DNA of 62,978 nucleotides, the filler included, from Octopus bimaculoides (taxonomy: Eukaryota): assembly GCF_001194135.2 (NCBI RefSeq). It is 4 parts of 4 records of this genome, joined end to end, with 100 filler letters (N's around TTAATTAATTAA, not from the genome) between each part and the next. Parts side by side here need not be neighbours in the genome. Positions count along the whole stretch, not along the records: positions 1 to 27,457 come from NC_068984.1; 3 more parts are not named here. The stretch is one strand, 5' to 3'. Within the stretch, counting starts at the first letter, position 1, and the number at the start of each line of letters is the position of its first letter. The translations under genes and the position numbers were made by a program. The notes beneath the pieces were generated by a model. The model ran no database searches. It was not told the origin of the DNA and was given only the letters and a program-made list of their open reading frames with translations. Below, in pieces: positions 954 to 25,112 of this stretch.

Positions 954-1089
954 CAGTCACAATATACAAACATTTCTCATGGCACCAGTACACTGTTTAC
1001 AGATGCTTACACTTTTAATGTTTTCTGTGAATTTTTCACGGGCCCAGCTAATATATATAATTCTTCTAGTATATGTGTGTGTGTGTGTG

Positions 1090-2287: not shown

Positions 2288-2320
<33 letters not shown>

Positions 2321-2781: not shown

Positions 2782-3010
2782 AGGGTTAGGGTTAGGGTTA
2801 GGGTTTTAGAGTCAGCGTTAGGGTTTTAGGGTTAGGGATAAGGTTTTAGGGTAGGGGTTAGGGTTTTAGGGTCAGGGTTATGGCTTTAGTGTTAGGGATA
2901 GGGTTTTAGAATTAAGGTTAGGGTTAGGGTTAGGGTTGGGGTTTTAGGGTTAGGGTTAAGGTTTTAGGGTTACAGTTAGGGTTAGGATTGGAATTTTAGG
3001 GTTAGCGTTA
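2782..3010 (+). repeat. Degenerate interstitial (TTAGGG)n / TTTTAGGG tract
   Basis: Runs such as AGGGTTAGGGTTAGGGTTAGGG are interspersed with TTTTAGGG and TTAGCG variants. Confidence 0.95.
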
Positions 3011-3897
3011 TGGAAAAATGTGAAAAATGAAGAAATTGGAGGGGGAGGGGACAAAAATGTCTTTCCGAAAATAGTAGCTGAAAAACAGGAAAAAAGCTAA
3101 AAGCAGTAGAAATGCACGAACGATTGTGGTGGTGCCATGAAGTAAACATGCTTCAGGTATACTCGTTTATTTATACAAACGTAACTGAGATGAAATATGT
3201 CATAAATAACAGTGACAAACAAAATATACACCGCCAGAAGTTGTTGTTGACAAACAACAGCAGTAATTATATTCAGCTGAATACACGTCACTGATTGGTT
3301 GAAATTACCAAAATACAACAACTTTAACATAAAATAACTTTGAAAATACAAACTTTTATCAACAGTACTAAGAGTAAAAGATATTTTATATGACACATAC
3401 TACCAGTGTCCAAAGTTTGAAAGTGTTTAGTTACAAAAAATTAATTTCTCGATGTGCTGTTCAAAGGGTAAAGATCCCCATTCACCTTCATAATGCCAAG
3501 AAACTTTATTAACATCGTAAACAACTTTTGCTATATATGAAAAATATGTAAAATATTAATCAAATGATGAAAAATATCTATAATAAAATTCTAATTGATA
3601 ACTATAAACTTTTATTAAAACGAAACACGCGGGTGAAGTAAATCTTGTAGTGTGAAGAATCAACACAGGCGGGTGAAACACAACACAATGTGCGGTTGTC
3701 ATAGTAACAAGTTGTTAATGCCTTGCTGTCGGTTGATTAGTTAAAATTACCCAAATTTCCCAACTTTAATTCCAAATAGCATCAGATTCTTTAATTTACG
3801 AGATTCAAAATTCACAGTTGCATTGATATACTAAAATTAAAAGTAATCGGAACAAAATTAAAGGGGGCTCATTTTGTGAATGAGAAAGACTAGAACC

Positions 3898-4150
3898 TGT
3901 GCGTGGCTCAGTGGTTAGGGGTATTCGGCCCACGATCATAAAGAGTCACGAGTATGATTCCCTGTGGCGGGCTGTGTTTTTTGAGCAAGGTACACCTTGC
4001 TGCAGTCCACTCAGCTGGCAAAAATGAGTTGTAGTTGTAAGTCAAAGGGGCCAGCCTTGTCACATTCTGTGTGAGGCTGGATCTCTTTGATAACTACCTT
4101 ATGGTATGCATGTCTGTGGAGTACTCAGCTACTTGCGAGTTAATTTTATC
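3898..4150 (+). mobile_element. tRNA-derived SINE (family C), degraded
   Basis: The head GTGGCTCAGTGGTTAGGG and the body AAAGGGGCCAGCCTTGTCACATTCTGTGTG match the reverse copy at 44998-45366. Confidence 0.75.
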
Positions 4151-4295
4151 CTCATGTGGTAATGAAAAGTGAAAGTGACATCCAATATTTGCTGTGTTTA
4201 TGGATCTATGTATTTATTGTCTCTCTCACTTCCTCTGTGTTCCTCCTCTCTCCTGCTTTTAATTTAACAATGTGTGTACTCTTTTAATCTTTTAC

Positions 4296-4495
4296 CTGTT
4301 TCAGTCATTTAACTGTGGCCATGCTTGAGCACCGCCTTTAGTCGAGCAAATCGACCCCAGGACTTATTCTTTGTAAGCCTAGTACTTATTCTATCAGTGT
4401 CTTTTGCTGAACTGCTAAGTTACAGGGACATAAGCACACCAGCATCGGTTGTCAAGCGATGTTGGGGGGACAAACACAGACACACAAACATATAC

Positions 4496-4535
<40 letters not shown>

Positions 4536-4702
4536 ATATATGATGGGCTTCTTTCAGTTTCCATCTACCAAATCCACTCACAAGGCTTTGGTTGGCCCGA
4601 GGCTATAGTAGAAGACACTTACGCAAGGTGCCATGCAGTGGGACTGAACCCAGAACCATGTGGTTCGTAAGCAAGCTACTTACCACATAGCCACTCCTAC
4701 GC
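4296..4702 (-). mobile_element. Full-length SINE family A
   Basis: Reverse complement of 2120-2515, including the central TA microsatellite. Confidence 0.85.
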
Positions 4703-5313
4703 CTAGTGTATGTATCTATGTATCAACTTTACTTCCGATCTATGTATCTACTTTTCTTGCAATGTGATAAACATTTAAAAACACAAAATGAACACCATCA
4801 CCAATCACTGTCTCTTTCACTCTCATTTGTCTCTCACTCTCTTCCTCTCTCACTCTCTCACTCTGTCTCTTTCTCTCTTACTTCCTCTCTGAAACATTTA
4901 AAAACGCAAAACGAACCCGTCGCCACTCTCTTTCTCTATCACTCTCTCTCTCTTTCTCTATCACTCTCTCTCTTTCTCTCTCACTCTCTCTTTTTCTCTC
5001 TCACTCTCCCTTTTTCTCTCTCACTCTCTCTCTCCCTTTCTCTCTCTCACTCTCTCTCTCTCTCTCTTTTTCTCTCACTCTCTCTCTCTTTCTCTCCCAC
5101 TCTCTCTTTCTCTCTCACTCTCTCTTTCTCTGTTACTTCCTCTCTGTCCTCCTCTCGCTCGCTTCTTTGAAGTGTGACACACCACAGGTACTGATAAAAG
5201 CATACAAAACTAAGCGTATTAATATTATTAACATTCTAATAGTGAATGTATATGTTAGTATGGTAAAACATTCTGTGAAATACATTTTATTTTTTATATC
5301 TTAACATTTTCAG

Positions 5314-5448
5314 GAAACACTCTAATTGAGCATTTGAATCAAAAAATCCATCAGTATACAACAAAGACCTCCATGCTAGGTTTATTCTACAACAAACCAA
5401 ATATATTCAGTTCTGGTTTCATTCTCACTTACAAAGCTATTCCTAAAG
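5314..5448 (+). CDS. CUB-like domain protein, exon A (C-terminal third of CUB-1; phase 1-1)
   Basis: ttttcag| acceptor and |gtaact donor. Encodes GNTLIEHLNQKIHQYTTKTSMLGLFYNKPNIFSSGFILTYKAIPK, ending in the CUB-type GFxxxY motif. Confidence 0.75.
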
Positions 5449-5989
5449 GTAACTTGTTTTCTTTCTGACCGTTCTACTCTAAAAATATTTAGTAATTTTT
5501 CTTATATACAGCAAGAAATAAGCCACCCATGATGATTTCATGTCTTCAAAAGTTGGTGAGATTGTTGTTGATAGTCATCTTAAACTTCTGCAGGTTGATG
5601 ATATTAAAACATGTACAAGGGAGGTGGGGCAAAATAGAGTTGGGAGGAGGGGGAGGTGATGGGGGTAAGGATGATGAGAAAGATTAGCAGGTGCAACTGA
5701 TAATCTTGAGCATAAATACCAGGCTTAAAAAAAAAAACAAGTACTGGAGTTAGTTCATTCAACTAAAATTCTTCAAGGCAGTGCCCCAGCATGCTCACTA
5801 TCTAATGATTGAAACAAGTAAAAGAAAAGATAATATATACAGATAGAGAGGAAATACATGTATATGTGTATATCATCAACATAGTTTCATTAGCTACAGT
5901 ATAATTTTTAAATGACTTTCATTAAACAAAGACTATTAAGATATAAGTATTTTGTTGTTACAGGATTGATATTCTCAATTTATTTCTAG

Positions 5990-6080
5990 CAAAGGAAACC
6001 TGTCCAGAAAATAAAGTATACAAATATCCTGGAATTAAGGATCAGTTTATGATATCAACAGCTAGTGGAACTGATTACAA
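5990..6080 (+). CDS. CUB-like domain protein, exon B (N-terminus of CUB-2; phase 1-2)
   Basis: ttatttctag| acceptor and |gtaagt donor. Encodes (A)KETCPENKVYKYPGIKDQFMISTASGTDY(N). Confidence 0.75.
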
Positions 6081-7148
6081 GTAAGTAAACAATTTGTACT
6101 TTAGTCACTTTTCCTTTCATTCTAATTTTCTCAATGATTTGCATCCATTTCTTCATGCTACAATAGACAGAATAGTTTCTTAACGCAAAGAAAGTACTTT
6201 GCTTTACTCTACTTGCAAATGATATAAAGCACAGCATGAATCAAGCAAAGAAGTCACTCAAACTGCCTGAAATCACGCACTATTACCAGAGTAAAGAATA
6301 CAATAGATAACTTAGTTCTAGATTCCTTTAAAAGGCTGGATAATCATGACTGGAATACCCATGATCATGGGTCTGTTCCATCATGAGTCTGTTCTGTCAG
6401 AGATTAACAGAAAGAACAATCACAACAGAACTAGATAACATCATTCTGGAAAATCAAACAGAGATACAGGCATCTTGTGCTGGTCTTGATATCAAAACTT
6501 GATTGAGGTAAATAATTCTATTGCAATTTAATTTCCTCGGTCCTTAGCCAATTTTGTGAGATAATGAGTATAACTGATTATTATAATATGCAAATTTGAC
6601 TGATTGCAGTTAATCATCTGGAAACGATGGACTTTAGCACATTTACTTACTTGTTTAGAGATTATTTATTTAGAATTGTTTAAAGGGTTTTAACCTTTAA
6701 ACAATACTATTTTTCTACAAAATTAAATGCACAACCTTTTATAATTTTGCAACTTATTCAGCAAGTACAGGACGGTGAAGGTCATCAAAAGAAATCAGAA
6801 TAATATTCAAACTTATCTGAAGTTATCTTTCATACCTCATGGGAAACTGAAAAGATGAGTCATCGATTAATGATATATTTTTTTACCACATTTTTTTCTA
6901 CTTGAATTTAGTGTTAATATATTTAATGCATGGATCATTAAAAAGCTAAGTTTCAAGATATAAGATAAAAATTTTCATCTCTGCCAAAATATGCAATAAA
7001 GATCACAGCACATTTTCATAGGTGATTAAACATATTTTATATTGATTTGGAAGGAAATATATGAAAGTCATAGCAATTGGATTTCAATTCAGGATACTTT
7101 AAGCACCAAACTTGATACTGCTGGGGCAGTATCGAGTTTTTCATCAGT

Positions 7149-7203
<55 letters not shown>

Positions 7204-8460
7204 TACACACAGAGGTTTCTGCATAATTTCCATCTAATGTTATTGCTGTTATAGTTTCACTCCAGTTTTATTCTGATTGAGCAGAACCTTAATGAAATTT
7301 TTTCCATCATGATCATACTATCTTTTTTATGACTATACTATTCAGTGTGTCCTTCCTTTTTTGTAAGGTGATAATGTTTGATTTGAGGGCAATTTAGCGA
7401 CTGTCACTATCAGGTTGAATAATTGCACAAAGCTCTTGCATGAGTTTGTAAGATTTCAATTGATTTGTAACTATCTTTCTATGCTTTGTGTAGCACATTC
7501 CTCAATTATATTGTCTAACTTGGAAACAGGAGCCAGTGGTCTATGTTGATGTTCAGCCATAGATTGACTTTGATTGATTAGATCAATGCATTCCACCAGT
7601 GTCCATCCTGTCTTCTCTTTCAGACAGAATGTATGAAGGACTACATCATCCTTTGTATGTGTTCCTTTTTTTAAGAATGTAAGACGTCATTTAAGGAAGT
7701 TTTGGCTGCTACTTCTAGTATGCTGGGTGTCCTTAATATGTGTTCTTAATAAATTATAATGTTGGGTGTCCTAGAATATATGTCCTTAATAAACCATAAA
7801 TTAAACCATAGATTCATCTCTTGAATCCAAATATCTTATAAGACTGTTCTTTATCATTTATTTAATAAAACAAAATGATATTGAAGGTGACTTTCTAGCT
7901 TCTATATCCTTTGCACAGAATATATTATAGTCATAGCTCCCTCCTATACAGAATATCTCATATTCATGGCTTTCTAAATTATCCCCTGTATTAGACTATT
8001 GGTTGGAGGGTTAATAGTTCATTTCTATTTACCTATGTTACACATTGTACAAGGCTGAGACATAACTGTTTCTAGTCTAGTCCATTTTTGTATGAATAAT
8101 TACTGAGTAAAAGTGCAGCTTACCATTGTGAAAAATTTTCATTGACTTGAGTTGCTAAACTGAAATCATTGAGTATATTTTGGAGACATCAATAGAGTTA
8201 ATCATCCACTGATAGCTGAATGTTTTGAAAATATCAAGCTGTCTAGAAAATGTAAAGCTGTATAAGAAAAATGCTAAGCAATTAGATTTATTTAAAATTT
8301 TCTTTAACTGAGGAATATTGATTTCCTTTAGTTAACAACATGACTAAACTCTGTAAGAGGTGGACTATTGTCAACTAAATCAGCCTAAATATATTACTGA
8401 TAGTTTGTCAATTGTTAGTCAATTCTAAGAATAAAAATCAATGTGAACTTCATCATTGTA

Positions 8461-9449
8461 TATGGTGCATTCCAGAAGGTTTGAGAATCTTTTAGGAGAG
8501 GCAGTCATAACTGTCCTACATTATTGTAATTTTAGTGTATCATTACTATTCATCAAATAAACTGAACTGCCAACTTTTTTTATACAAGATTGAAGGAGAT
8601 GGCTGTAAGAACACTTTGAACACACCCTACTAAACATTGCTTATCACAGCTAACTAGCTTGCAGAATGCAGTCAGGCTGAGAATACAATTTAGAACCTTG
8701 TTATGCAATAAAGTTTTGTGATAAACTGGGCAAAAATGCTACTGAAACTTATGAAATGCTCCAGACTGCTTATGGATTAACTTATATGAGCTGAGCATCT
8801 GTGTTTCACTTGTATAAGTAGTTCAAGGATGGTATAGAGGAGGTCAGAGAAGATGAAAGATGTGGGAAGGAGAGGGATGCCAGAATATCAGAGTTGGATA
8901 AGAAAATTCACAACTCTCTGGATGATGATCACCATGTATAAAAAGCATAGTTTGATGTTGATGTGGCAATTGTACATGAAGAATTATTCATGAAGATCTA
9001 AACATGAACAAAATTTGTGCAAAGTTTGTTCCCAGGATGTTCAGTGACAAACAGAGGGAAAGGCGCATTGGTGACAACAAAGAGATGATTGACCTTATTA
9101 CCTCCAATTTTAGAATACTTGCATCTTTGATAACAAAAGCTGGATCTATTATTACTATTCTGGTGATCAAGTACTTGTTAAAGATAGGCATCAAAACTCT
9201 ACAGTCCAGACTTTGCTTCCTGTGACTTTTGATTACTCCCCAAGCTAAAGGAGAACCTCAGGCAGTCATTTTGAAGACGATGAAGGGGGTTATGACATTT
9301 TAGAGGTCTTCCATGGCACCTTCATGAAGTAGTTAGAGTGCTACAGGTGCATTGAAGTCAAGGGATCTTACTTTGAAGAAGATTAAAGTTTTGCACTTTG
9401 AAATAAATCTCTCTCCTGAAAAAGTCTCAACTTCTGTAATACACCTTGT
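8461..9449 (+). mobile_element. Internally deleted mariner element
   Basis: Degenerate TIRs (TATGGTGCATTCCAGAAGGTTTGAGA.. / ..TCTCAACTTCTGTAATACACCTTGT). The N-terminal HTH peptide YAIKFCDKLGKNATETYEMLQTAYG is at ~8702-8776. Confidence 0.8.
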
Positions 9450-9498
9450 TTAATTGAGTGTAAAAATATTACATAACTGAATGTCATTAATATTTCAG

Positions 9499-9623
9499 CT
9501 TACCAGATTATTGCCACTTCACACTTCACACAGATGAATCTTCCTACATTGAATTAAATTTACAGCAACTTGATATTAACAACTCATGTCTGCCAAGTTA
9601 TCTTGACATGTCGATAAATAATT
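9499..9623 (+). CDS. CUB-like domain protein, exon C (middle of CUB-2; phase 2-1)
   Basis: tatttcag| acceptor and |gtaagt donor. Encodes LPDYCHFTLHTDESSYIELNLQQLDINNSCLPSYLDMSINN, which fits the CUB pattern C-x-[FW]-x-[IL]..I-x-L-x-[FL]..C..xYL. Confidence 0.85.
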
Positions 9624-9850
9624 GTAAGTTCTTACTGTATCTTTTATCTTTTATTTGTTTCAGTTATTTGACTATGGCCATGCTGAAGCACTGCCTTGAA
9701 AAATTTTAGTTGCACAAATCTACCCCAGGACATAAAGCCTAGTACTTATTCTATTGGTCTCTTTTGCCAAACCAATAAGTTATGGAGACTAGTTGTCAAG
9801 TAGTGGGAGAGACAAGCAGAGATGCAAAGGCACACACACATAGATATATA

Positions 9851-10955
9851 CAGGGTGTCCTGAAATTAAGGCAGCCAAAGCTTTGGACTTTACTAACTGT
9901 TAATAAATGTGATAAAATATGAAAATTATACATCATTATAAAACTTTAGTGTGCCTGCTTTTTGTTTCAGACTATATAAATTCAGATTTATAAATTAGCT
10001 AATGGCTATAGACCAAAATACAATCACAACCCTCCACAAAGGAGGTGAAAATAATATAGCTTAAAATTAACTGAACAATAGTCTGGAAAATTGTCAAGAA
10101 ATTTCAAGAGACTGGTTCCACCACTGATCAACCTGGACATAGTCGAAAAGGAAGTGTGAAGACCCCTCAGCTTATCAAAAGTACCAGAGAAAAGATATGG
10201 TGAAATCCTCATCATTCTCTCAGAAAACTGGCTGCCACAGCAAAAATAAGCTGAACATCAATGTATTGAGTACTGAAGGACAATCTCAGAACCCACCCCT
10301 ACAAGATGATCTACCATCACGTGCTCACACAAGTTTATAAGGCCATGAGACTGAAGAGAAGTCGTCTTATCCTGCATCAGATAGCTGAAGGCATGCTGCC
10401 CAACTTAGTATTCACTGATGAAAAGAAATTGGACATCAAACAGACAATAAATCACTAGAATGACCAACTTTGGAGTGTATCTTGCTCTGTTGAGTGTAGA
10501 CTCGTAAATCAACGTCCAAATTCAGTCTGTTATGGTTTGGGCAACTGTGACAACCATTGGAAGGTCTCCTCTTGTTTTTGTGCCCTCAGATGTTAACATT
10601 AAAACCCAGCAATACATAAGTGACATCTTGGAAGCTGAACTGCTTCCATGGGTGAATGAACACTTTCACGGTGCACCTTGAAGCCACCAACAAGACTTAG
10701 CACCATCCTACAGCTCCAAACAGACACAACACTGGATTCAGAAAAACATTCCATCGCTCATAGGCAAGGATGTATGGCTCTTAAGAAGTCCCAATCTCAA
10801 CTTGTTGGATTTTTCTGTTTGGCTCATTTTGGAGATGAGGGTCTTGAGCACTTCTCCTGCTTTGCTCAACACTTTGAAAGCAAAACTGCTCCTGGAATGG
10901 GCTTTGATTTCACAAGAACAACTGTGTGTTGCATGTGAAGCTTTCACACCGTTTC
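9851..10955 (+). mobile_element. maT/DD37D-like Tc1/mariner transposon, copy 2 (3'-truncated)
   Basis: TA|CAGGGTGTCC terminus. Catalytic-domain remnants VMVWATVTTIGRSPLVFVP..QYISDILEAELLPWVNEHF and SPNLNLLDFSVWLILEMRV, with stops and frameshifts. Confidence 0.8.
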
Positions 10956-12127
10956 TGCCAAGAGGCCATAATATTCTCCATGCAAGCTCCATCTCTTCAG
11001 TGTTCTGTAGGGATGGGTAGATAGTGTTTGGATGTTGAGTGTGCCTCTAGGCTTCATCAGAGGGTCTAAATCGTTAGGAGAGTCGACACATACAAGAGTC
11101 AGTTACTAATAGGTACAGTATATTTTTCTTATTGAAGAGGACATAAGAAGAATAGGAGCAAGACTTAGGGTGTGAGAGGAGTAAAATTTAGTAAAATGGA
11201 TTAGTTATAAGAAAGCGAAAGTATTGCCTTCCATGATTCATGTTATTTTGTCCAGTGGTGGATAGGTAGGTATATTCGTTCTAAGGATGAGTTTTTTAGG
11301 AAGGGTAAATTCAGGCAGTGGTTCTTATTTTGTTTACTTATAAATACACATTATGCTTGTGTTTACAGTGGTGGGTTTGAAAGTATGGTCCATGTTTCAG
11401 AGGTGGAAGTTTATATGTAGGATGCTAGTTGGTACTAAAGAGAGTATGGCACCAGGTGATGAACAAAGTACTGTGTTCGTGTTCATTATTTTTTCAGTCA
11501 ACAAGTCTCTGAATCCTTGTGTGCAGTGGTTGTAGTCAGTCCTGCAACCTAATTGGTCAGCTATTTTTTTGACAACTTTGATGTGGTTCTAGTTCGTTGA
11601 TAGTTAACAGATAACACAAAAACAAATCAGATAAATAAATAAGTAAATAAATAAATAAAAAAATAAATGGATAAAAAAACCGTGGCCACTATGGGCAAGT
11701 AGGAGAGCAAAATAACATTCAAACTAGATTAAACTGAATTAAATTAAATTAAATTTAGACAAGTAAATAAATAAATAAATGAGTATATGAGTGAGTACAA
11801 TAACCAAAGCAATATGACTAAGAGGATATGATTTTAAGGGACAGCATAAGAAAAAAATAAATTATTTCAACCGTATAGAAATAAAAATAAAAATGTATAT
11901 CTATCTATCAGGGGAATCAGGAACTGGACAGAGGATTCATTTTTGTCAGAAGGTGTAATAAGGAGGATTTTCTGGTAAGGGACAACAAATGGAATGGACC
12001 AGATCGGTTGCTTGTTTTTTCTAATTATTTTAATGTATATCTTTTTATCTTTCCCTTCCAATACTCTATAGAAAATCTTCTTTCTGTACTTTTTGTTCAC
12101 ACTCTAACAGACATACATTTTATCCTG

Positions 12128-12304
12128 TGATTTACGAGTCTACACTCAACAGAGCAAGATACACTCCAAAGTTGGTCATTCTAGTGGTTTACTGTCTGTT
12201 TGATGTCCAATTTCATTTCTTTTCATACTAAGTTGGGCAGCATGCCTTCAGCTATCTGATGCAGGATAAGACGACTTCTCTTCAGTCTCATGGCCTTATA
12301 AACT
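12128..12304 (-). repeat. Inverted near-identical duplicate of 10332-10511
   Basis: The reverse complement matches copy 2 almost base for base, including the CACTAG variant (copy 1 has CACCAG). Confidence 0.9.
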
Positions 12305-12523
12305 GTTTGATATCCATTTAACAACATGTTAACTGAAACAAACTCTAGTGAAACAATCTCCTACAAACTTTATGGTATAGAAAAGAAAACATGACCAAGA
12401 TTTTCAATTTTATTTTAATATTTCACTCTTAATTTTCAAGTATAATTTTCCTTTGTGAGTAATGAAAGAAAAAGTTATTTTAGTATTCTAAAAATGGAAG
12501 TATATTATTATAATCTTTTGTAG

Positions 12524-12652
12524 TATCTTTTCCATCTGAAACTGGTTATTCTAATCATCAAGTCTCCATGCAAGCAAAAAGTATACACATTCAATACCTA
12601 AAGAAAACTCAATGTAAATTCCTCATACTTCTTTATGTTAAATCTGTAACAG
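12524..12652 (+). CDS. CUB-like domain protein, exon D (C-terminal third of CUB-2; phase 1-1)
   Basis: tcttttgtag| acceptor and |gtaagt donor. Encodes (L)SFPSETGYSNHQVSMQAKSIHIQYLKKTQCKFLILLYVKSVT. Confidence 0.75.
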
Positions 12653-13648
12653 GTAAGTTGTGTACCAACATTTATTTTTCATGTTTAACATTGATTTCTG
12701 ACTAGTTTACAAGACCAATTTTTTTTAAAAGGTGGGCATATTTAATTGAATATATATATATATCATCATCATTTAACGTCCATCTTCCATGCTGGCATGA
12801 GTTAGACAGTTTGACAGGAGCCAGCCAGATAGAAGACTACACCAGGCTTCAGTATCTGTTTTGGCATGATCTTTACAGCTAAATGCCCTTTCTAATACCA
12901 ACCACCTCATAGAGTTGACTGAGTATTTTTTACATGGCATAGGTGTATGGTTAAGAAGCTTGCTTGCCAGTTATGTGGTCTTGGAGTGAGTGTGGTGGAT
13001 GGAAACTGAAAGACACCTGTTGTGTGTGTGCATGCATTCATATGTACCCTTGTCCTAACATCACATGATGGTTGTAAATGGGCATCATCACACAAGTGAA
13101 GTTGTTCATTTCTAACCTTCTATAAAAAACATGTCTTGCTATGAGAAAATATTACAATGTGTTGTATCCTCTATTGAACTATTATAACACCCACTCCAGT
13201 ATAGCAGTATAGTTAGTTAGACAAGTAAAAACACAACTATCTATCTTGGACTACTGAACTGACACTCCTCAACTTCCTATATCACAGTATTTGTAATGAT
13301 TATCACATACAACTCATCACATGGGAGGGGTGTTACTATTCTCTCTATAACATCTCCCTTTTAAGTTTTTCTTTTTTAGGGAGTATAATTTTATTTCTTT
13401 TATTAGTAATAATTTTTACATCATCTCACTTCCTTCTTTTTGAGTTTTTGTTTTTTTCATACAGTTACATATTTAATATCTTTTTCGTTCGGCATCCGCT
13501 TTCAGGAACTCCATACGTTTTCTTTTTCTTTTGCTTGTGTATCTGGGTTCAATTATTTGTAGTGGTGTTGGGACTTGAAAAGCATTATATAACCATTCCA
13601 TTGATTTTTCCATTCTCTTAGGTTCTTCCATTCTCAATGAATCTTTAG

Positions 13649-14290
13649 TTAGTTCATGTATCTCTTGTATACCCCTTTTCTTCCTTTTACCATGTATAGC
13701 ATTTTTGCTATGCATTTGGTAATCACACCATGTTTCCAACTTTGTTTTCTGTTCTTATATGCCATAACAAATACACTTTCACCAATTTTGAAATATCTTG
13801 CTGTATTATCCATAGCAACTTTTCTTTTCTTGCCAGGTAGCAATTTGTCGAAGACTGATTTTATTTTCCTCGCAAACATCAGTTCCACTGGTGACATACC
13901 TGCTGGTGTATTTGAATTTGGTGTCATACAGTATACTCTTAAGAATTGTTGTAGAGCTACATAATCCATGACTTCCTTATTCAACTTTCTTAGGGCTCTC
14001 TTAAATGTATCAACATAGTGTTCTGCTTGTCCGTTAGATCTGGAATGGTATGGTGCCATAGTTACATGTTCAACAGCAAACGTTTTACGAAATTTTTTTA
14101 ACTGAAAAGACACAAATTGCATTCCATTATCAGACACTATTGTGTTTGGGACACCAAATCTCGCAAACAGCTCATGTAAAAAGTTTGTCACAGCTGAGGA
14201 GGTTGGCTTTTTGCACTTATGAATGTTTGGCCATTTAGAGAAACTATCTACTATCTACTATCACTAAGTAGTATGAACCATTTGAGAGAC
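13649..14290 (-). pseudogene. Gypsy integrase remnant
   Basis: FGVPNTIVSDNGMQF..MAPYHSRSNGQAEHYVDTFKRAL: the D-35-E core region. Confidence 0.9.
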
Positions 14291-14680
14291 CAGTGAAATC
14301 GATGTGTAGTCTCAACGATAGAACATCTACTTTTGGCCAAGTTTCACTTTTTATTGTTGGTAATTTTGCTGCTAGAGCACACCCTCTGCAGCCTTTTACT
14401 AAATTTTCAATTTCTCTATCCATTTCTGCCAGTATATGTAGTTACGTATTAAAGCTTTCATCCTCAAAATATCTGGATGTCCAACATGAAATTCCCTCAA
14501 CATTTTCTTTTACAATGTTTCAGGTATTACTACTCTGTGCATACATCAGTACGCCATCACAAATTGAGTATAGGTTCATGTCTTGGTTTTGTTTCACACC
14601 AATCTTGTTCCTATTTACTTTTCTTGTCCACTATTCGTTTCTATTATGAATTTGTCTTTTCTACAACTAGTTTTATATCT

Positions 14681-16204
14681 TCAAGGGTCACCATTAATTT
14701 TTGTATCACATTCCACATTACATTTTTTCATTTCTCCTTCTGATCTTAATGGTTCACAGTGTTTCGGTATCAGTCTGGACAAACCATCCACATGCCCTAG
14801 TTTTTTTGACAGTAAATATTCCAATTTGTAATCATAATTCAATAATGTAGGGCTCCATTGCTGTAGTCTATTTGCTGTGTGTGTTGGTATTCCTTTTTTA
14901 GAACTATATATTGACAGTAGTGAGTGATGGTCTGTTTGTAGACAGAAACTTCTTCCATGAATAACTCTACGGAATTTTTTCAGACTGAATATAATTGCTA
15001 ACACTTCCTTTTCTATTTGGCTATGGTTCTTTTCAGCTGGTAGTAATGATTGTGACGCATAAGCTATAGCCATTTTACTCCCATCATCATATTTGTGTAG
15101 GAGCACTTCTCCTTCACTATAATCACTCACATTTGTAGCCAATATAATATCCAACTTTGGATCAAAATGCGTTAATGATAAGTTCAATTTTAAAATGTGT
15201 TTTAATTTGTCAAATGCCTTCTGACACTTATCAGTCCAGCACCATTTTGCATTTTTCTTTAACAGATCATTGAGTGGGGCCCTTACATTGTGTGTATTGG
15301 GGATATAATTTTGATAATAATTCACTAATCCCAAAAATGCTTGTAGCATAGTCACATTACTCGGTGTGGACATATTTTTTATCACAGTTGCTATGGATGG
15401 ATCCAGTTTTCATCTGTTTTTATCTATTATCTGGCCCAAGTATTTAATTTTTTTCAGAAAGGACTCATATTTTTCTTCACTTTACTTAAAACCATGTTCT
15501 CTTATCTTTTCGAATACCCTCTTTACGTGTTCTACATGTAGTTCATGTGATTCACTTTTTATTAGGTTATCATCTAGATAAGTGATAGCAAAATCACTGT
15601 CCACCAGCATTGTACCCATTACTTGTTGAAATATGGAAGGGGCTGCTTTTACACCGAAGAGAAGCCACTTAAATTTAAATAAGCCATGGTATGTATTAAT
15701 GGCTAATAATTGTGAGCATTCTTCTTCTACTTGGATTTGTAAATATGCCTCCCAGAGGTCTAATTTTGAGAAGAAATTCCCTCCATTCAGTTTTGCAAAC
15801 ACTTCCTTAGGACTTGGCAATGGGTAGTTATGTGAGATTAAGCAATCATTCAACCCCGTTGAAAAATCTGCACAAACTCTTAACTTAGTATGTTTCTTAT
15901 TAACATAGACCATAAGTGCTGCCCAATCTGAGTGATCCATCTTCTCCATTATTCCTAGGCTTTCAAGTCTTTCAAGTTCCTTATTTACCTGTTCTAGCGC
16001 CATGATGCGTACATTCTGTTTTGGCTTAAATACAAGTGTTGCACTTCGTTTTATTACAATTTTTGCCTTCATTTTTGTGCAGCAGCCCAGTTCATCTGAG
16101 AAAACAAGTGGAAATAAATGTTTTCTTTTGCGTTTCAATCCCTCAGCCACATTACAACCTTCAACTGAACCGACTATATTCCCAGACAAAACAATTATGG
16201 GCAC
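14681..16204 (-). pseudogene. Gypsy reverse transcriptase and RNase H remnants (frameshifted)
   Basis: RT motifs LRVCADF, FSKLDLWEAYLQI, LLFGVKAAPSIFQ and YLDD. RNase H motifs IAYASQSL..YSQIEKEVLAI and LQTDH. Confidence 0.9.
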
Positions 16205-16338
16205 ATTTCACATTTTGAACAGTTACATCCACTCTGTGCCAAGTAGATTTACTGAATTTTTGAATGCATATATCTTTACCTTTTCCATTTGGTCATGAAA
16301 TGTCACATTACACACAAATTCACCTACAAAATACAACC

Positions 16339-17337
16339 TGTAGGGAAACCACCTCTCTCGGTTATATATTTACAAATGCGAACGTAGCGAGTAACATCTA
16401 GCCTTCAGCCCGCCTTGGACCCTGCTGTGTCCATCACTCTGATCGGTTCTTATTTGCGTGGCATTTGTCACTGGTTCTGTTTCGCACCAGGGTGCATACC
16501 AACCAATTGTGGCCTTCTGATAAGGTCACGTGAGAGAGTGTTTTTCAGAGGCTTCTGGAGCCCCTTTTTCTCTATAAATAGCCTGCTTTATCCACGCCAG
16601 TTTGTCTCGGCTTCAGATTTCTCTGAGGTCTGGTCGTTGACCACACAGAACACCAACCAGCCAGTTTCCAGTGACGACATCAACACCACCGTTCAAATGT
16701 TTACTACAGTCTCGTCACCAGTGGCAACATGATGCCACTACATACACGCTACCAACAGCAACCGCAGCTTCTCCTGACGCTGTTAGTGTGAATTGTTTCC
16801 ACCGCGAAGTAACAGCCAGATCAACCTATGAGAATCTCCTGTATTCAAGTAACCGGCTCGGCATAGAAGCCTCATCTTCACATCACGTGACTTAGCTCTG
16901 CTTTGAAGCCACAACCTCTTATATACAGACTTTCTATTTACTGTGTACCTGAACTATGAACTGGTGTTTTCTTATCTTTGTGTTCAGGATGTTTATCGTC
17001 CATGTTACAGACTCTTTTCCATGCTCTGTATTTCTCATTCACTCACACACACATATTTATGTATACACACTCTTGTTCACACGACGGCCTGTCATATATA
17101 TTGTGTTATTATGTCGCACTCACTCACACTTACACAGACATTTTAGTTTATACCAATAGACCTTATTCTCTATATATCTTTAATGGTTGTCTCTCTCTTT
17201 CCTTGCTGGCATTTCCTTGCATTTCACATGTGAGCTCTCTTATGTTATGTTATATATTTTGTGTCGATTGTGCGACGCGTTAAAAGGAGCCTGTTCCATT
17301 TGTCACCATCTCCTTGGTTCGCACAGTCATTTCTACA
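16339..17337 (-). mobile_element. Solo LTR (~1 kb) of an unrelated element nested in the Gypsy protease
   Basis: TG...CA ends and a 4-bp TSD (AACC 16335-16338 / AATC 17338-17341). Removing it rejoins the protease as GKR-LYFVGEFVCNV. A TATATAAG box lies on the minus strand near 16920. Confidence 0.8.
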
Positions 17338-18154
17338 AATCTTTTACCCATGACACTGTGGGCTACTTTAGTAGATTTACTTAATTTCAGCTTACTGATA
17401 TACTTCCAAGTTTCTTCATTCATAATGGTAATATCACTCCTAGTATCTAACAGCCTTTTTACTCTTATATCTTTAATTTTCACATTTACAAATTTCCTCT
17501 TTGTCACATTACCGTTTTCTTTCAACAACATCTTGTTTATTCTTTTTTCTCTGTTCCAACGTTTTGTCATCTTGGTTTTATAGTGTGCTTTTACATGTCC
17601 AATTTTTCCACAAAGAAAGCATTCTGCTTTCTTAAAATTTTACATAATATGTCTATTGTATTTTTAAAGTTTATATCAGAAAGTTTTTTCAAAAGTACAT
17701 AATCGTTGTAACATTCATGTTCTCCTGCTGCCAGTTTTTTTAAGATTAGATGTGTTTTCATATTGTTGTCTCAATCTTTGCACTCTTTTTTGAAGATCTG
17801 TTCATATCTTCTATAGTACACCTTGAAGATAACTCCCTCATCTGGTTCATACTCAAATTCCATCATTGAGTTAGTAACATAATCTGGCGAGAACATCTTT
17901 ACAGCATTCTTTTAATGAAATGTTAACTCAATAATGGAATTTAAGTATGAACCAGATGAAGGTTTGCTCAAGTTGCAAAAACAGCAACAACAACAACTGA
18001 AAGAAGAACAACAACAATTACTATTACAGCAATAAATGCTACAATTCATTAATTGCAGCATTTGTTGCAGTAATAGTAATTGTTGTTGTTCTTCTTTCAG
18101 TTGTTGTTGTTGCTGTTTTTGCAACTTGAGCAAACCAGCCAACAAATCTTCCAT
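17338..18154 (-). pseudogene. Gypsy gag (polyQ N-terminus) and aspartic protease remnants
   Basis: MEDLLAGLLKLQKQQQQ..; FEYEPDEGVIFKVYYRRYEQIF; protease LLDTRSDIT (a decayed DTG motif). Confidence 0.85.
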
Positions 18155-18805
18155 AATTTTGCGATTTTGTATACTTAAAATTTACACAAAAAAACTTTTG
18201 TGAGTTTTGTAACTCTATGTGAGTTTGTTTAATCCTGGTGAGTTTGTTAATTCCTTATGAGTTTGTTAATTCCTTATGAGTTTGTTAATTCCTTGTCGCC
18301 ACTGTTGTAATCCTCAGTTGGACTGTTATTTCACCCACTCTGAAATAGCAGTATAGTTAGACAAGTAAAACACAACTATCTATATTGACTTCCCGACTAT
18401 ATTGACTCCTCGACTTCCAACATCACAGTATTTATAATGACTAGCACATAGAAATAAGTATGAGATATGCTAGAAATAAGTATGCGATATTGTAATTTTA
18501 TTCATGATAGTTTCTGTTACATCTCAGGAGGATCATTATGCTAATAATAAATACATGCATTGGCTCTATTTCATTTCTTTTATTTTTACCAGTCAACTAG
18601 TTGACCATTTATTCAGTTAGCTAATAGATTGTTTGATTAATCATTGTTGATAAACCTAGGTTCTTCAGAGGACTTTCACCACCATTCAAACCTCATCAAT
18701 GACATGCCCGCTCAACTCCAAGTCTGCTTCAGGTCTCTCTGTTTCCTAATTTACAGATTCTAATGTTATGTTTATAGAAATGTGAGTGAGAATATGTGTG
18801 AGGTA

Positions 18806-18851
<46 letters not shown>

Positions 18852-18868
18852 GCATGCATGTGTACGTA

Positions 18869-18900
<32 letters not shown>

Positions 18901-19079
18901 TGTGTGAATCTATGTGGCATGGTTTGGATTCTGTAAGAGTGCTTATGCATATGTGTGTGGGCATGTGTCTCTATATGTGTACGGTGTAAATTCTGTGAAA
19001 TGTATGAGTGGTTAGGAGCCATAAAAACTGAAGATTCACAGAAAATTGATTTTCTCAAATAATATGGAGGTTCCCTTGA

Positions 19080-19600
19080 GATAGTAGATAATTTCTACTA
19101 CCTAGGTGGCTTAATCAGCAGTAGAGACGAACGTTCTGAAAGTGAAATTGTTAGACTAAGAATAAGATGGAGAAAATTCAGAGAGTTTTTACCTCTGTTG
19201 GCAATAAAAAGTCTTTCTCTCTAAGTAAAAGGAAGTTTATATGATACTTGCGTACAAACAGTAATGCAATATCGTAGTGTGATATTAAGCTCTGAATGCA
19301 AAAGACATGTGAAGACTAGAGAGAAATGGAGCTAGTGTGTTCCATTGGATGTGAATGTCAGTTCTACATATATGACAGAGTATTAATGTACTAAGAGAAA
19401 AATTAAGCATAAGGGGTATCAGATGTAGTGTGGAAGTGCTTCTGCACTGGTTTGGCCATATGATGCATATGGATGAAGATAGTTGCATAAAGAAGTGTTG
19501 ATTGTTTAAAGCAGGTGGAGCTTGTGGAAAAAGGAAACCCAGGAAGACCTGGACAGAGTTTTGAAGACTGATCTAAAGATGCTGAGCCTTAGAGATGATT
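19080..19600 (+). mobile_element. RTE-like LINE 3' remnant
   Basis: Colinear with 26780-27300 (YLGGLIS.., RIRWRKFREFLPLL.., GRGRPRKT-equivalent region); CpG-decayed. Confidence 0.65.
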
Positions 19601-21798
19601 GATGATTTTCTGTGCCTGAGAAGACCCATCCATCACAGCAGAAATGATATCCTAAAACCACCTTCATTGTGTTTGTATGTTCAAGGCCCTACCCCTGCTC
19701 CACACTTGCTACCCAATCAAGCATTTGCTCTACATCACATCACACTTTTATCTTTGCTACAATTCAGCTGCTGTCATCACCTGAGAGCAAGATAATCACA
19801 TGTTACATCCCCTCCCTCTCAGTTACCTTCCTCCTTTTTCCCCCTGAAACCACTTCCATTTCTCATTGTCATCCCTTCCCACACTATTTCCACCTGTCAT
19901 TTCTTTTCTGTGCCTTCAGCCATTGCTCTTTCTCTCTCCTCCTCCCTGTCCCCCTCTTTCTTTCTTTCTCTGACATACTCCAGTCTTATCTCTATCATTC
20001 TCAATTACTGCCCATATCTACCATCAAACTTTACCATAATCAAATTCCTGAGACACTCCAATATCTCTCACCATCACTTGCTACATTCTCCTCTATAATC
20101 CCCCCCCCCATCTCTAACCATCTCTCCTTTCACTGTTATGAAACTTACCTCCTATCCCCCCACCACTACTGTATTCTTTCCAACTTTCCAGCTACTCCCA
20201 TTCATCCTTATATACTGCAAAGTAGTCTTGTATCACAATTGCAAGACTCCTGGGCTTCTGTTTCCATTACACTCTAGCCTCCCAACATTTAGCATAAAAC
20301 TGTTGCTCCACGTCTCCCTCTCAAATACTACCCATCCCCATTTAGTCAAAGAGGGTTTTCTCTATTCTTTTTTCCTTTTGCCCCTTTTTCCTTCTTCTGG
20401 CAATATGAAAAAACACCCAGTATGCTTTGTAGAGTGGTTGACATTAGGAAGGGTATCCAACTGTAGAACTAACATCAGAGCTCAACACAATCCTACAGCT
20501 TGCTGGATCCTGTCAAATCATATAGCCTATTCCAGCATGAAAAATGGACTTTAAATGTTAATGATGATGATATTTATTTTATAGTTAGTGTCTTTGCCTT
20601 TGCACGTGTTGGGAGGGGGTGTTGCATGCATGTCATGTGTGTATAGACATTCAAATCCAGCTGTTTTACTTTTTGTGATGGTACAGATAAAATCACAACT
20701 CAATGATTCTCTTCATCTTTCATTTTAATAACTCAAAGCAATAAAGAATGAGTATTTCCTCACTGAGCATCCTGGGAACAAAATTTGTATAGATTCAGGT
20801 CTTCATGAATAATTCTGTCTACAGTTGCTACAACAACTCCAAACTGTATACTTATTGTCTTTATTGACACACAATGGTCTTCATCTAGAGAATTGTGAAT
20901 TTTCTCACTCAGCTCTGATATTCTAACATCCCTCTCCTTCCCACATCTTTCATCCTCTCTTACCTCCTGTATACCATCCTGGAACTTCTTGTGCCAGCAA
21001 AAAATAGATGCTCAGCTCATATAAATTAATCCATAAACAGTCTGGAGCATTTCATAAGTTTCTGTTGTATTTTTGTCCAGTTGATCACAAAACTTTATAG
21101 TGAGCTTCCAGATTGTCTTCATGGCCCATCTGCATTTTGGAAAATTGTCAGCTGTGACAAGAAATGTTTATTAGGGTATGTTACAGCCACCTTCTTCAAT
21201 CTGGATTTAAAAAGTTGGCAACTCAGTTTATTAGATATTATATACTAAATTTATTATTACACACTAAAATTACAATATATACTAACATTACAGTTATATA
21301 GTAAAATTACATTAATGTAGAGCAGTTATAACTGCTTCTCTTAAAAAAGTCTCAAAACTTCTGAAATTTACCTTGTACACTCTCCCATCCCAATAGATAT
21401 AAATATAGAATCTGTAAGTTAGGAGACTCGATGAAGATGTGGAGTAAACATGGCATGTCATTGATGAGGTTTGAATGGTAGTGTAATAAAAGTACTCAAA
21501 GGGACTTTGTTTGATTGACCAAATGATTAATCAAACAATTGATTAGTTAACTGGTTAAGTAGTTGAGTAATAATAATAAAAGAATTGAAAAAGACAGTGC
21601 ATGTGTTTCTCACTGGCATAATGACCTTCTCAAAATACAAAAATGAAATATTCCTGATAGATTTAGCTTCTTATTTTATGGAGATATGGATCTTCTTTCT
21701 GTTTAATAGTTTACAAAACCTGAAACTAAATTCTGCTTTTATGAAGGCAACAAGACTTGGTGAATCATTTATCTTTTATCTGCCAAAATATTTTACAG

Positions 21799-21892
21799 TT
21801 CCTTCCTGCTTCCTCAGCCCCACTATTGATGTCGTCAGTGGACCAAAAAGATTCCTGAATGTTCCACAAACTGCACTATTTGACCCTGATGT
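21799..21892 (+). CDS. CUB-like domain protein, exon E (N-terminus of CUB-3; phase 1-2)
   Basis: ttttacag| acceptor and |gtatgt donor. Encodes (V)PSCFLSPTIDVVSGPKRFLNVPQTALFDPD(V); same phase and size class as exon B. Confidence 0.75.
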
Positions 21893-23064
21893 GTATGTAT
21901 TATCCTACTTATTAGTATTTGTTCAAGGATCATTAATTAATACATATCTCTTTCATTAAAATTTCAGTCTCTAGACAAAAAAGATCATGCTGCATCCAGT
22001 ATGTTAGTGATTGGATAATAATCTCACTATTTATATTCTGTTCCATGGCTTCAATATTTATTCCCTCTAATTCGTAACAAGCATAATAGTCTAACCTCCC
22101 TCAGTTATCATTATTGACAGCCAAGAAAGTTGTGAAAAAGCCATGAGCAGTGTAACTCATTGCACACAACAAGCTTATAGCTTTCTATGCTCACTTCTAT
22201 GGCACATTGATACCATCACCTTCACCATCAAGTGAAGGTGACTGGTGATGATATCATGAGACCATCCCTAGTGGATTGGTATGGACCCTCACAGATGGGC
22301 TCATTCAATAGCTTCTCATTGAACTGAACAGATCAGCTAAAATGCAAAGAGTCTGAAGTCAAATTTCTCCTACTTGTAGCATGAAAACCATTTCTGTGTA
22401 CTTGTTTCAGTAATAGTGCCTTCTCCATACACAGCACAAATGTCTCAAATGATTTTGGTGACTTTGGGACCTTGACTGAAAGCAAAGAGAAGTAGCTGTC
22501 AAAAAGCTCATTTTCACTGACTTTGCACTTTTATGTTTGAAAAAGGGTAAAATTTATTCAAATTTCAAAACAATAAACAAAAGCTGTTGAGAAAGAACAG
22601 AGCAACAAAAGGTCATAAAATGCTATGATAAATATATTTTTCATGTTAATTTGATAATATAGGAAAGAAATAAATGAATTTAGTTGATGACCCCCAAAAA
22701 ATTTCAAAGCATTTTTATGAAGGAGATGCAAGAAATTCTTCTTCTCCAACATCATGAAAACATGCTGCTGCTACTATAACATTCATCGCCATTAACCCTT
22801 TCTATATTACATATTCTAACTGCCTAAAGTCTACATCCAAACAGTGAATTGACCTTCCTCAAGTGGAGCTGATTTGTTCTAATTAACAAGAACAATCACT
22901 AATTTTACTATCATTAGTCATCACCACTACTAAGGACACCATTCACTACTGCCTCCCCAACATTTTAAAAACCCACCAACATAAGCCATTAATTGATTAA
23001 TTATAATATAACTTATATAATAGCTTCAAATTCTCAACATTTTTTCTTTTTGTTTGTTTAACAG

Positions 23065-23174
23065 GAAAGAATGTAAATGGACATTCAGAATTAAACCAAA
23101 CCATATTTTACTGCTTGAGATTACAACAAACACAAGTGCAATGTCAGCTTACTCCTCTTTCTCATACTATGATG
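23065..23174 (+). CDS. CUB-like domain protein, exon F (middle of CUB-3; phase 2-1)
   Basis: Long pyrimidine tract plus aacag| acceptor and |gtaagg donor. Encodes KECKWTFRIKPNHILLLEITTNTSAMSAYSSFSYYD, with CUB-type CxWxF and YYD(G). Confidence 0.85.
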
Positions 23175-23939
23175 GTAAGGGAATTCCCAGCAACAAGAGT
23201 CTGGATTAATTTTTATTTTCTTAATATAGCTTGATAATAATGGTTCCTTACATTGGGTCAAGATTACAAATTTGTTGGGTTGAAATTGATTGGATTAACA
23301 CTAAAATGTGTCTGGGATTTCGTTTATCAATACTATGAAAGGTAAAGTGGATGAATGGCAAAGTGAATCTTGGGATGTAAACTTGGAGGATGAAACTAAA
23401 TACCATGAAGTACGTTAACTCTAGCATTCCCCAGTTTCTGCCATACACATCACATAAAATGTTTAGCTACATTTCTTCCAGCTCTTTACAGTCTGAGTTC
23501 TAATACTGCTGGGGTCAACTTAGCCTTTCACCCTTTCAGGTCAGTAACATACTAGTTAAGTACTAGGGATCAATACAATCAACTAACACCCTCCCCCTAA
23601 AATTGCTAGGCTTGTGCCAAAATTTGAAACCATCCTTATTGTTTTTATTATTGCTTACTTAGCATTTTGTTGATATTTTGCCAGCATTGGATTACTACAT
23701 GTCCAGTTGCATTATACAACCTTAGATATCAAACATCTTTCTTATCATCCTTGTTGTGTCAAACAAACAGGCTTTTTAAAGAGAGAGGAAATTCATTTTG
23801 ATGTCCAACATCTTCAACTAACCACTCAAACTTCTTGCAACTTGTTCTTAAGGCTCCTATTCTTTGAAGTTTGTATTTTAGGCTCTGGTATTTTTTCTAA
23901 TTTCTCATATTCTTTTTCTCATTATCTTACATTATATGA

Positions 23940-24573
23940 GCAAGTAATGTCAGTTAAGCATCACAGTCTATTATCGGGGATGGAGCAGCATTTCCCATTC
24001 AAACTGCTCCAGCCTCTGGAATGTCCTTCTTGCTGTATGTGGCTGAGCAATATCCTGATAGAAGAAAACCTTTCATTTTGAAATCAAAGATGATCATTCT
24101 TCTTCTAGCGCTGGTATCAATGAATGGTTGAATCACCAAACCCAAGCTTCTCTGCTAGTTCCTTAACAGTTACAATGGGATTTTGTTCCACCAAGGTTTG
24201 CAGGATGTCTTTGTCAAGCTTTACAGATCTTCCAGGATGAAGCTCGTCTTCTAGGCTGCAGTTTCCAGCTTGGAATTTCTGAAACCATCATTGACACTGA
24301 CTTATGCTTACTGTCCGATTCCCATATACTGCACTTTCTGTTGCATTGTTGCCTTCATTGAACTCATAAAGCAAATACGCTGAATATGTTCCTTTGACAC
24401 TTCCATTATAACTTTCAAAAAATTACTGTTAAAATCGAACTGCACTCTTCAAAACTTGTACTAAGAATAAGTACAAATTAAATTACAACCTGCTTTTAAA
24501 GCAAGTTGTTGCAGGTAGTGTATTCTGTCCCTCTCTGTCTTTTAGTTCATGCATTATTTATGGGATGACCCAA
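23940..24573 (-). mobile_element. Internally deleted mariner, 5' part
   Basis: TIR TTGGGTCATCCCATAAATAATGC at 24573-24551. The body aligns to 46557-46860. Confidence 0.75.
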
Positions 24574-25035
24574 TTTATATGTATGTATGTGTGTGNNNNN
24601 NNNNNNNNNNNNNNNNNNNNNNNNNNNNNNNNNNNNNNNNNNNNNNNNNNNNNNNNNNNNNNNNNNNNNNNNNNNNNNNNNNNNNNNNNNNNNNNNNNNN
24701 NNNNNNNNNNNNNNNNNNNNNNNNNNNNNNNNNNNNNNNNNNNNNNNNNNNNNNNNNNTAATGGCAAAGTTAGAATTATATTTTATGTATAAAGCGGTTT
24801 CAGGGAAAATCCAATGTATCCCTTCATCGGAGACGGTAATAGTAGAAGAATGAATTATTACATCTATAAGAAGAGATTTGTAGTAAGAAGTGAGAGCGAT
24901 GCGTAGAAGAAAGAACTCATACACACACACACACACACACATACACACATATATATATATATAATCAAGGATACAAGATAATACCAGCATTGCTAGAAAT
25001 AAGAGTTGAAGATATGTATATATAAGATATGTATG

Positions 25036-25071
<36 letters not shown>

Positions 25072-25112
25072 CGTGTACGTGTGTGTGTGTGTGTGTGTGT
25101 GTATGTATATGT

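Follow-up and report, generated by a model that had tools for sequence, protein, structure and literature searches.

Six internal exons of the uncharacterized Octopus bimaculoides gene LOC106877781 encode divergent CUB-like repeats

Positions 5314–23174 of a 62,978-nucleotide (nt) stretch of Octopus bimaculoides DNA (hereafter the window; four joined parts of assembly GCF_001194135.2, the first of which, positions 1–27457, derives from NC_068984.1) contain six consecutive internal coding exons of LOC106877781, a gene that spans 172.6 kb in GCA_001194135.2. The 227-residue translation of the spliced exons is an exact substring (residues 278–504, 100% identity) of the 648-residue RefSeq protein XP_052823212.1 (here P0010), whose record is named 'uncharacterized protein LOC106877781 isoform X1' [Octopus bimaculoides], and the six exons stand unchanged in XP_052823212.1/213.1 (X1), in X2, in X3 and in the earlier model XP_014782277.1. 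The best explanation of the whole, to which we assign a probability of about 0.85, is that these are exons of a single-pass, octopod-only surface protein of the receptor type with four CUB-like domains, the window holding domain 3 complete, together with the last exon of domain 2 and the opening two of domain 4. A first-pass annotation, made from the DNA alone, had described the exons as a hidden gene. That a real multi-exon gene is present is confirmed by the identity with RefSeq, but the gene was not hidden, since LOC106877781 already stands in RefSeq, as three current isoforms and one earlier model, with precisely this set of exons; and, although the exons are real, they are only a part of the gene, covering residues 278–504 of 648. 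LOC106877781 is thus already annotated but uncharacterized, its exons are correct and the finding is an ordinary one: the locus at 5314–23174 requires no fresh annotation. What the comparison does document is that a true splice chain and the type of domain it encodes were recoverable from raw cephalopod sequence alone.

Both strands were scanned for open segments bounded by AG and GT and matching the exon sizes given in the first-pass annotation, which were then spliced. A single consistent chain emerged, on the plus strand, in which all six exons are bounded by AG and GT, the phases (1-1, 1-2, 2-1, 1-1, 1-2, 2-1) are compatible throughout, and the joined 684 nt form one open frame. All six acceptors consist of a pyrimidine tract followed by AG, and five of the six donors read GTAA, the remaining one, after exon 5, being GTATGT. 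Lone open AG..GT segments are frequent by chance (the window scan returned hundreds), so the chain by itself is no proof of a gene; for the 227-codon open frame as such, the probability of chance occurrence is P ~1.4e-6 at the window's stop-codon frequency of 5.8%. A chance origin of the chain is ruled out by the exact match to RefSeq. In the Octopus vulgaris locus on OX597817.1 that is syntenic with window positions 4892–27457 (here L001), every one of the six exons is present and undamaged: each retains its AG/GT boundaries, the frame is open, and the sole change in length is an in-frame 3-nt insertion in exon 6. The six chained exons without a stop, as originally described, are therefore upheld both by the RefSeq protein and by the intact O. 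vulgaris exons.

The chain was connected to P0010 in steps. The 227-residue translation matched P0001, an O. vulgaris 'hypothetical predicted protein' of 217 residues that is 92% identical to it, carries the UniRef label 'CUB domain-containing protein' and shares the junctions of exons 1–4 with the window chain; a phmmer search with P0001 returned P0002 (O. sinensis LOC115216771, 562 residues), and a search with P0002 returned P0010. By tblastn, these six exons are the only parts of P0010 that map to the window. When the 227-residue chain was compared by phmmer with every stop-to-stop segment in the window and in L001, no additional CUB-like exon came up. Domains 3 and 4, all of whose exons have been located, comprise three exons each, with phases 1-2, 2-1 and 1-1, so that each such domain opens and closes in phase 1; the end of domain 2 is likewise in phase 1. 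The repeated module reported earlier (91/125/129 nt versus 94/110 nt) is thus correct in its sizes, with the second module's third exon falling outside the window. The O. vulgaris counterpart of this exon is 138 nt long and is found at L001 45196–45333, past the window's syntenic end; enumeration of phase 1-1 exons gave no credible candidate for it at window positions 23175–27457, and tblastn of P0010 confirmed that none is there. On the upstream side, enumeration of phase 1-2 and 2-1 candidates produced no convincing exon in window positions 1–5313, and in O. vulgaris the same enumeration located domain 2's second exon, at L001 575–675, beyond the syntenic end.

The assignment of the repeats to the CUB family draws on profile scores, motifs, exon phases and a predicted structure. 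Against a Pfam CUB (PF00431) gathering cutoff of 21.4 bits, the profile search that had been proposed for the spliced exons gave 22.8 bits (E = 1.2e-4) for the window chain; full-length P0010 scored 38.5 bits, 17 bits over the cutoff, and the family members P0007, P0011 and P0012 scored 29–38 bits. P0010 carries two partial matches, one in domain 1 (profile positions 51–106) and one in domain 3 (positions 14–64), the latter falling in exon 3 of the window, where residues 67–115 of the chain align with profile positions 14–64. The spacing between the first and second cysteines (C1–C2) is 30–31 residues in four of four domains; domain 1, which lies outside the window, has the canonical four cysteines, with C3 and C4 19 residues apart; and the motifs C-x-W, I-x-L-x-F and Y-D-G are present, as fits a CUB domain. 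The phase-1 borders expected of such a module are also found, domain 3 having phases 1-2, 2-1 and 1-1 and domain 4 beginning alike. When an AlphaFold2 (AF2) model of P0010 was searched with Foldseek, the matches at E ≤ 0.001 were all CUB proteins, except for those to the MIB domain and three bacterial adhesin chains. The CUB matches included C1r/C1s, PCPE-1, MAP-1, cubilin, neuropilins, MASP-2, Neto2 and others, with a best E of 1.6e-6 and probabilities of 0.98–1.00; template modeling (TM) scores of 0.52–0.55, computed on a low-confidence model, were obtained for C1r CUB2, a spermadhesin and TSG-6 (6f1d, 1spp and 2wno), with E just above 0.001.

Several results weigh against this reading of the gene. 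Taken alone, domain 3 scores 20.7 bits, just below the Pfam cutoff and over profile positions 14–62 only, and domains 2 and 4 alone give no Pfam CUB match at E ≤ 10. A family profile run against the sequences of the Protein Data Bank (PDB) matched MIB domains and no CUB chain. HHalign comparisons among the four repeats are mostly non-significant, the clear case being domain 2 versus domain 4 (P = 3.7e-5); domain 2 versus domain 3 is marginal (P = 0.037). Within the window the four-cysteine pattern fails: domains 2 and 4 have C1–C2 only, and domain 3 adds to C1–C2 the residues Cys382 and Cys424, whose spacing of 42 residues is non-canonical. The AF2 model has a mean predicted local distance difference test score (pLDDT) of 42.6 (about 45–70 for domains 3–4 and about 25 for domains 1–2). 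To these points may be added a ratio of non-synonymous to synonymous divergence (dN/dS) from O. vulgaris that is not significantly below 1 on 227 codons with few changes (P = 0.20), a literature search that found, in the library covered, no paper mentioning LOC106877781, and the fact that we infer the receptor mechanism discussed at the end from architecture only.

Part of this list would also suit a different module. The repeats could be some other all-beta extracellular domain, such as an unrelated jelly-roll or an Ig-like sandwich, which the CUB profile touches by chance: the Pfam matches, close to the cutoff, are confined to two of the four domains and span no more than about half of the profile, no solved CUB chain is matched in sequence, and the structure model is of low confidence. 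Because of that low confidence the fold matches carry a caveat, and the structure prediction suggested at the outset has yielded a divided answer, in which nearly every Foldseek match is a CUB protein but the model behind it is weak. Against a chance resemblance, the two partial Pfam matches are in register with the N- and C-terminal halves of the profile, whole-protein CUB scores exceed the cutoff in four family members (by 17 bits in P0010), and the Foldseek matches at E ≤ 0.001, MIB aside, are nearly all to CUB-containing chains at probabilities of 0.98–1.00. The cysteine spacing (C1–C2 of about 30, C3–C4 of 19 in domain 1), the CUB motifs and the 1-1 phase borders, which are those expected of a shuffled extracellular module, point the same way. 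Some accepted CUB domains also lack one cysteine pair, so the missing second pair lowers the case for CUB membership and does not exclude it. A non-CUB beta module is therefore unlikely, Foldseek and Pfam being in agreement. The repeats are best described as degenerate CUB-like domains, for which membership is not fully proven at the level of the single domain; the description of them as highly divergent is borne out by a Pfam score barely over the cutoff and by the state of the second cysteine pair, which domains 2 and 4 lack and domain 3 has in non-canonical form.

The layout of P0010 (Table 1) was derived from the family alignment, Pfam and the AF2 model (for comparison, AF2 applied to P0001 without an alignment gave a pLDDT of 29.8). 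It is that of a predicted type I single-pass protein, with an N-terminal signal helix, one C-terminal transmembrane helix and conserved ectodomain cysteines. All 14 ectodomain cysteines are kept in the Octopus paralogues and in Argonauta P0011, and 11 of the 14 in Argonauta P0012, whose model is without most of domain 3. Five N-glycosylation sequons are kept across four of four full-length family members, and in the family alignment the tail conserves a Y-x-N-T-E-S motif and a hydrophobic-E-hydrophobic C terminus. Between the 'secreted or surface' protein that had been anticipated from the exons, the signal peptide and transmembrane helix of the full-length model favor a surface protein.

Table 1. 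Exons and introns of LOC106877781 in the window, with their O. vulgaris counterparts, and predicted layout of the encoded protein P0010 (648 residues)
Feature	Position (window nt or P0010 residues)	Strand	Size and phase	O. vulgaris orthologue (L001)	Description
Exon 1	5314–5448	+	135 nt, phase 1-1	9942–10076, intact	Third (last) exon of CUB-like domain 2; encodes residues 278–321 and parts of codons 277 and 322 (NTLIEHLNQK...SGFILTYKAIPK)
Exon 2	5990–6080	+	91 nt, phase 1-2	10631–10721	First exon of CUB-like domain 3 (KETCPENKVYKYPGIKDQFMISTASGTDY); contains Cys326, the domain's first cysteine, kept in Octopus paralogues and Argonauta
Exon 3	9499–9623	+	125 nt, phase 2-1	14072–14196	Second exon of CUB-like domain 3, with Cys357 and Cys382 (LPDYCHFTLHTDESSYIELNLQQLDINNSCLPSYLDMSINN)
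Exon 4	12524–12652	+	129 nt, phase 1-1	17639–17767	Third exon of CUB-like domain 3, with Cys424 (SFPSETGYSNHQVSMQAKSIHIQYLKKTQCKFLILLYVKSVT)
Intron 4	12653–21798	+	9146 nt		Enlarged by a Ty3/Gypsy-type element
Exon 5	21799–21892	+	94 nt, phase 1-2	21204–21297	First exon of CUB-like domain 4, with Cys440 (PSCFLSPTIDVVSGPKRFLNVPQTALFDPD); also in O. sinensis model P0018 and paralogue models
Exon 6	23065–23174	+	110 nt, phase 2-1	22479–22591, with one in-frame 3-nt insertion	Second exon of CUB-like domain 4, with Cys471 (KECKWTFRIKPNHILLLEITTNTSAMSAYSSFSYYD)
Intron 6 (start)	23175–27457	+			Contains an assembly gap and a LINE-type remnant
Signal-peptide-like helix	residues 3–21				Model helix; hydrophobic N terminus kept in four species
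MIB/HERC2 domain	residues 36–96				Pfam PF06701, 70.9 bits
CUB-like domain 1	residues 99–213
CUB-like domain 2	residues 214–321
CUB-like domain 3	residues 322–436
CUB-like domain 4	residues 437–549
Ser/Thr-rich stalk	residues 550–598
Transmembrane helix	residues 599–627				Model helix
Cytoplasmic tail	to residue 648				Conserved, about 25 residues

Comparison with O. vulgaris also allowed the rate of change in the exons to be set against that of their introns. Mismatches amount to 27/684 (3.95%) in the exons versus 563/9606 (5.86%) in aligned intron (P = 0.016–0.019), and the exons contain one gap event where 5.1 would be expected (P = 0.036). Over the six exons dS is 0.063, near the intron rate, and dN is 0.037, so that dN/dS = 0.59; the earlier description of the protein as fast-evolving is supported in that, at this ratio of about 0.6, it evolves fairly fast. 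At greater distance, the window region is 62.6% identical to Argonauta hians with the ectodomain cysteines conserved, which makes long-term constraint clear, and for paralogue B the identity of about 91% between O. bimaculoides and O. sinensis indicates the same pace of divergence. Judged by these alignments, the family is constrained yet relatively fast-evolving.

The O. vulgaris gene models are irregular, and the orthologue itself looks either damaged or wrongly assembled. The annotation splits the orthologue into two, an upstream model whose end, at L001 9942–9969, falls inside exon 1 and in the wrong frame, and a downstream model, P0001, at L001 10001–56283. P0001 begins at an internal Met, skips exons 5–6 and adds two small distal exons, and the O. 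sinensis model begins at the same internal Met. In the last O. vulgaris exon (L001 51309–51580), about 30 nt that O. bimaculoides and O. sinensis possess have been deleted, which puts the sequence out of frame immediately ahead of the transmembrane segment; downstream of the deletion, the sequence coding for the transmembrane segment and tail is otherwise intact. The deletion is either a real truncation, leaving a secreted form or a pseudogene, or an assembly error.

These irregularities would be expected if the locus were a duplicate in decay or already without function, whether a finished or an incipient pseudogene, with the open frame in O. bimaculoides as a remnant. Such a reading could call on the frameshift in the last O. 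vulgaris exon, on O. vulgaris and O. sinensis models that lack the N-terminal half and start at an internal Met, on an upstream O. vulgaris model that enters exon 1 in the wrong frame, on a dN/dS of 0.59 that does not fall significantly below 1, and on chance, since a frame hit by 27 random substitutions would remain open in 27% of cases. It is contradicted by a complete frame of 648 residues that is intact in O. bimaculoides over a 173-kb gene, by exons in which substitutions are less frequent, and indels much rarer, than in the introns next to them (the sole indel being in frame), and by the 62.6% identity of the window region to Argonauta with its cysteines kept, which would be impossible without long-term purifying selection. 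The last exon is, moreover, in frame in O. sinensis, and the frameshift seen in O. vulgaris may accordingly be peculiar to that species or stem from misassembly. Because the full frame is present and the exons are better conserved than the introns, decay of the gene in O. bimaculoides is unlikely.

The gene's more unusual feature is not visible from the window exons: it is the MIB/HERC2 domain, encoded by the same gene outside the window (P0010 residues 26–98 with its flanks) and lying directly behind the signal-peptide-like segment. Its Pfam score is more than twice the PF06701 cutoff of 33.5 bits (Table 1); the family profile matched MIB1 in the PDB at E = 4.7e-23, and Foldseek superimposed the model on 3dkm with a TM score of 0.74 and a root mean squared deviation of 1.6 Å. 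The conserved residues Cys25 and Cys90 flank the domain. Pfam finds MIB_HERC2 and CUB only in P0010, with no ZZ, ankyrin, RING or HECT domain.

In Mind bomb 1, HECTD1 and HERC2 (PDB 4xi6, 2dk3 and 3dkm), the MIB/HERC2 domain belongs to E3 ubiquitin ligases and is located in the cytosol, and the domain is not otherwise known outside such cytosolic ligases. LOC106877781 resembles these proteins in having the same domain by profile and by fold, and differs from them in that its copy follows a signal peptide and is without the E3 partner domains. An extracellular copy would be unusual. The automatic name given to O. vulgaris paralogue B, 'E3 ubiquitin-protein ligase MIB2', is probably a misnomer.

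The first-pass annotation had also proposed a lineage-specific protein, and in three database-wide protein searches the only relatives found were octopod proteins; no non-octopod relative appeared, within the limits of database protein sets, decapodiform genomes not having been searched at the DNA level. Paralogue A comprises the window gene LOC106877781, O. sinensis LOC115210489 and O. vulgaris CAI9721438; paralogue B, on another chromosome, comprises O. sinensis LOC115216771, O. vulgaris CAI9728266 and, in O. bimaculoides, LOC106875589 and LOC106881348; and Argonauta hians has two adjacent genes (GAB1603386/7). A and B are 73% identical to one another, whereas each is about 63% identical to Argonauta, and the duplication that gave rise to A and B in Octopus therefore probably post-dates the split from Argonauta. 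These comparisons document an uncharacterized family of single-pass CUB proteins, apparently confined to octopods, in which a MIB/HERC2 domain occupies an odd position; the family could be of interest for work on lineage-specific cephalopod surface receptors. A bolder version, which we offer tentatively and consider doubtful in its entirety, is that of an octopod receptor family with an extracellular MIB/HERC2 domain stabilized by a new Cys25–Cys90 disulfide and followed by four degenerate CUB domains, duplicated independently in Octopus and Argonauta and serving as a fast-evolving, lineage-specific recognition or sensory co-receptor.

The DNA around the exons is typical of an octopus genome: positions 1–27457 are AT-rich (about 30–45% GC), with many microsatellites and transposon remnants. 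Intron 4 contains, on the minus strand at 13649–16204, a degenerate pol region of a Ty3/Gypsy-type long terminal repeat retrotransposon, broken into separate open reading frames (ORFs; Pfam rve, RT_RNaseH_2 and RVT_1, for integrase, RNase H and reverse transcriptase). Most of this element is common to O. vulgaris, at about 92% identity, so its insertion is older than the species split. In intron 6, an assembly gap (a run of N at 24596–24758) renders meaningless several listed ORFs that cross it, and a remnant of a long interspersed nuclear element (LINE)-type reverse transcriptase lies on the plus strand at about 25303–27248 (RVT_1 E = 7.6e-23 for 26032–26535); it is common to O. vulgaris at 87% identity, with more copies elsewhere in L001.

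Upstream of exon 1, nested inverted repeats occupy 2120–4696, with outer arms at 2120–2491 and 4318–4696 (86–93% complementary) and inner arms at 2511–2750 and 3190–3432 (91–93% complementary). Both types recur elsewhere in the O. vulgaris locus, and together they may make up a foldback-like array of short interspersed repeats. One interspersed repeat family is present both at 1077–1790 and at 9840–11373, with further copies at L001 3638–4710 and 14979–16511; by eye, its short ORFs look like Tc1/mariner-type transposase. Near the start of the window (54–359, minus strand) an open frame of 101 residues encodes two C2H2 zinc fingers (Pfam zf-C2H2 E = 7e-11).

From its architecture, the product of LOC106877781 would be a type I cell-surface glycoprotein whose disulfide-bonded CUB array, and possibly also the N-terminal MIB/HERC2 domain, may bind an extracellular partner. 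Cytoplasmic adaptors could be coupled to it through the tail, which is short and conserved (Y-x-N-T-E-S, then the hydrophobic-E-hydrophobic C terminus) and whose motifs are readable as SH2- or PDZ-type ligands, and the protein might thus act as a receptor, a co-receptor or an auxiliary subunit, in the manner of CDCP1, the neuropilins or Neto/LEV-10.

Among known CUB proteins, tolloid combines an astacin protease with EGF domains, and cubilin combines EGF repeats with 27 CUB domains, both having one-to-one orthologues across animals. The octopus protein shares with tolloid/BMP1 and cubilin the use of CUB domains as phase-1 modules, but is predicted to be membrane-anchored and lacks an astacin domain, EGF repeats and a long array of CUB domains. 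Orthology with tolloid or cubilin was rejected, Pfam finding only MIB_HERC2 and CUB and the searches returning only octopods; the first-pass annotation had correctly set the protein apart from both on this point. CDCP1, a vertebrate type I single-pass glycoprotein, is closer in plan, since there too the ectodomain is an array of CUB-like domains so degenerate that profiles hardly detect them, and beyond its single transmembrane helix comes a tail in which tyrosines are conserved. However, the two have no detectable sequence homology, the octopus tail is only about 25 residues long, and the octopus protein has four CUB-like domains together with a MIB/HERC2 domain, which CDCP1 lacks. The neuropilins, Neto1/2 and nematode LEV-10/SOL-2 likewise begin with a signal peptide and CUB domains and end, after a single transmembrane helix, in a short tail with a possible PDZ-type motif, and neuropilin and Neto2 structures are among the Foldseek matches of the P0010 model. 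By contrast, the CUB domains of these proteins are canonical, often calcium-binding, and accompanied by F5/8, MAM or LDLa domains, none of which Pfam detects in the octopus protein; the relation to the neuropilin and Neto type is one of fold and architecture, not of orthology.

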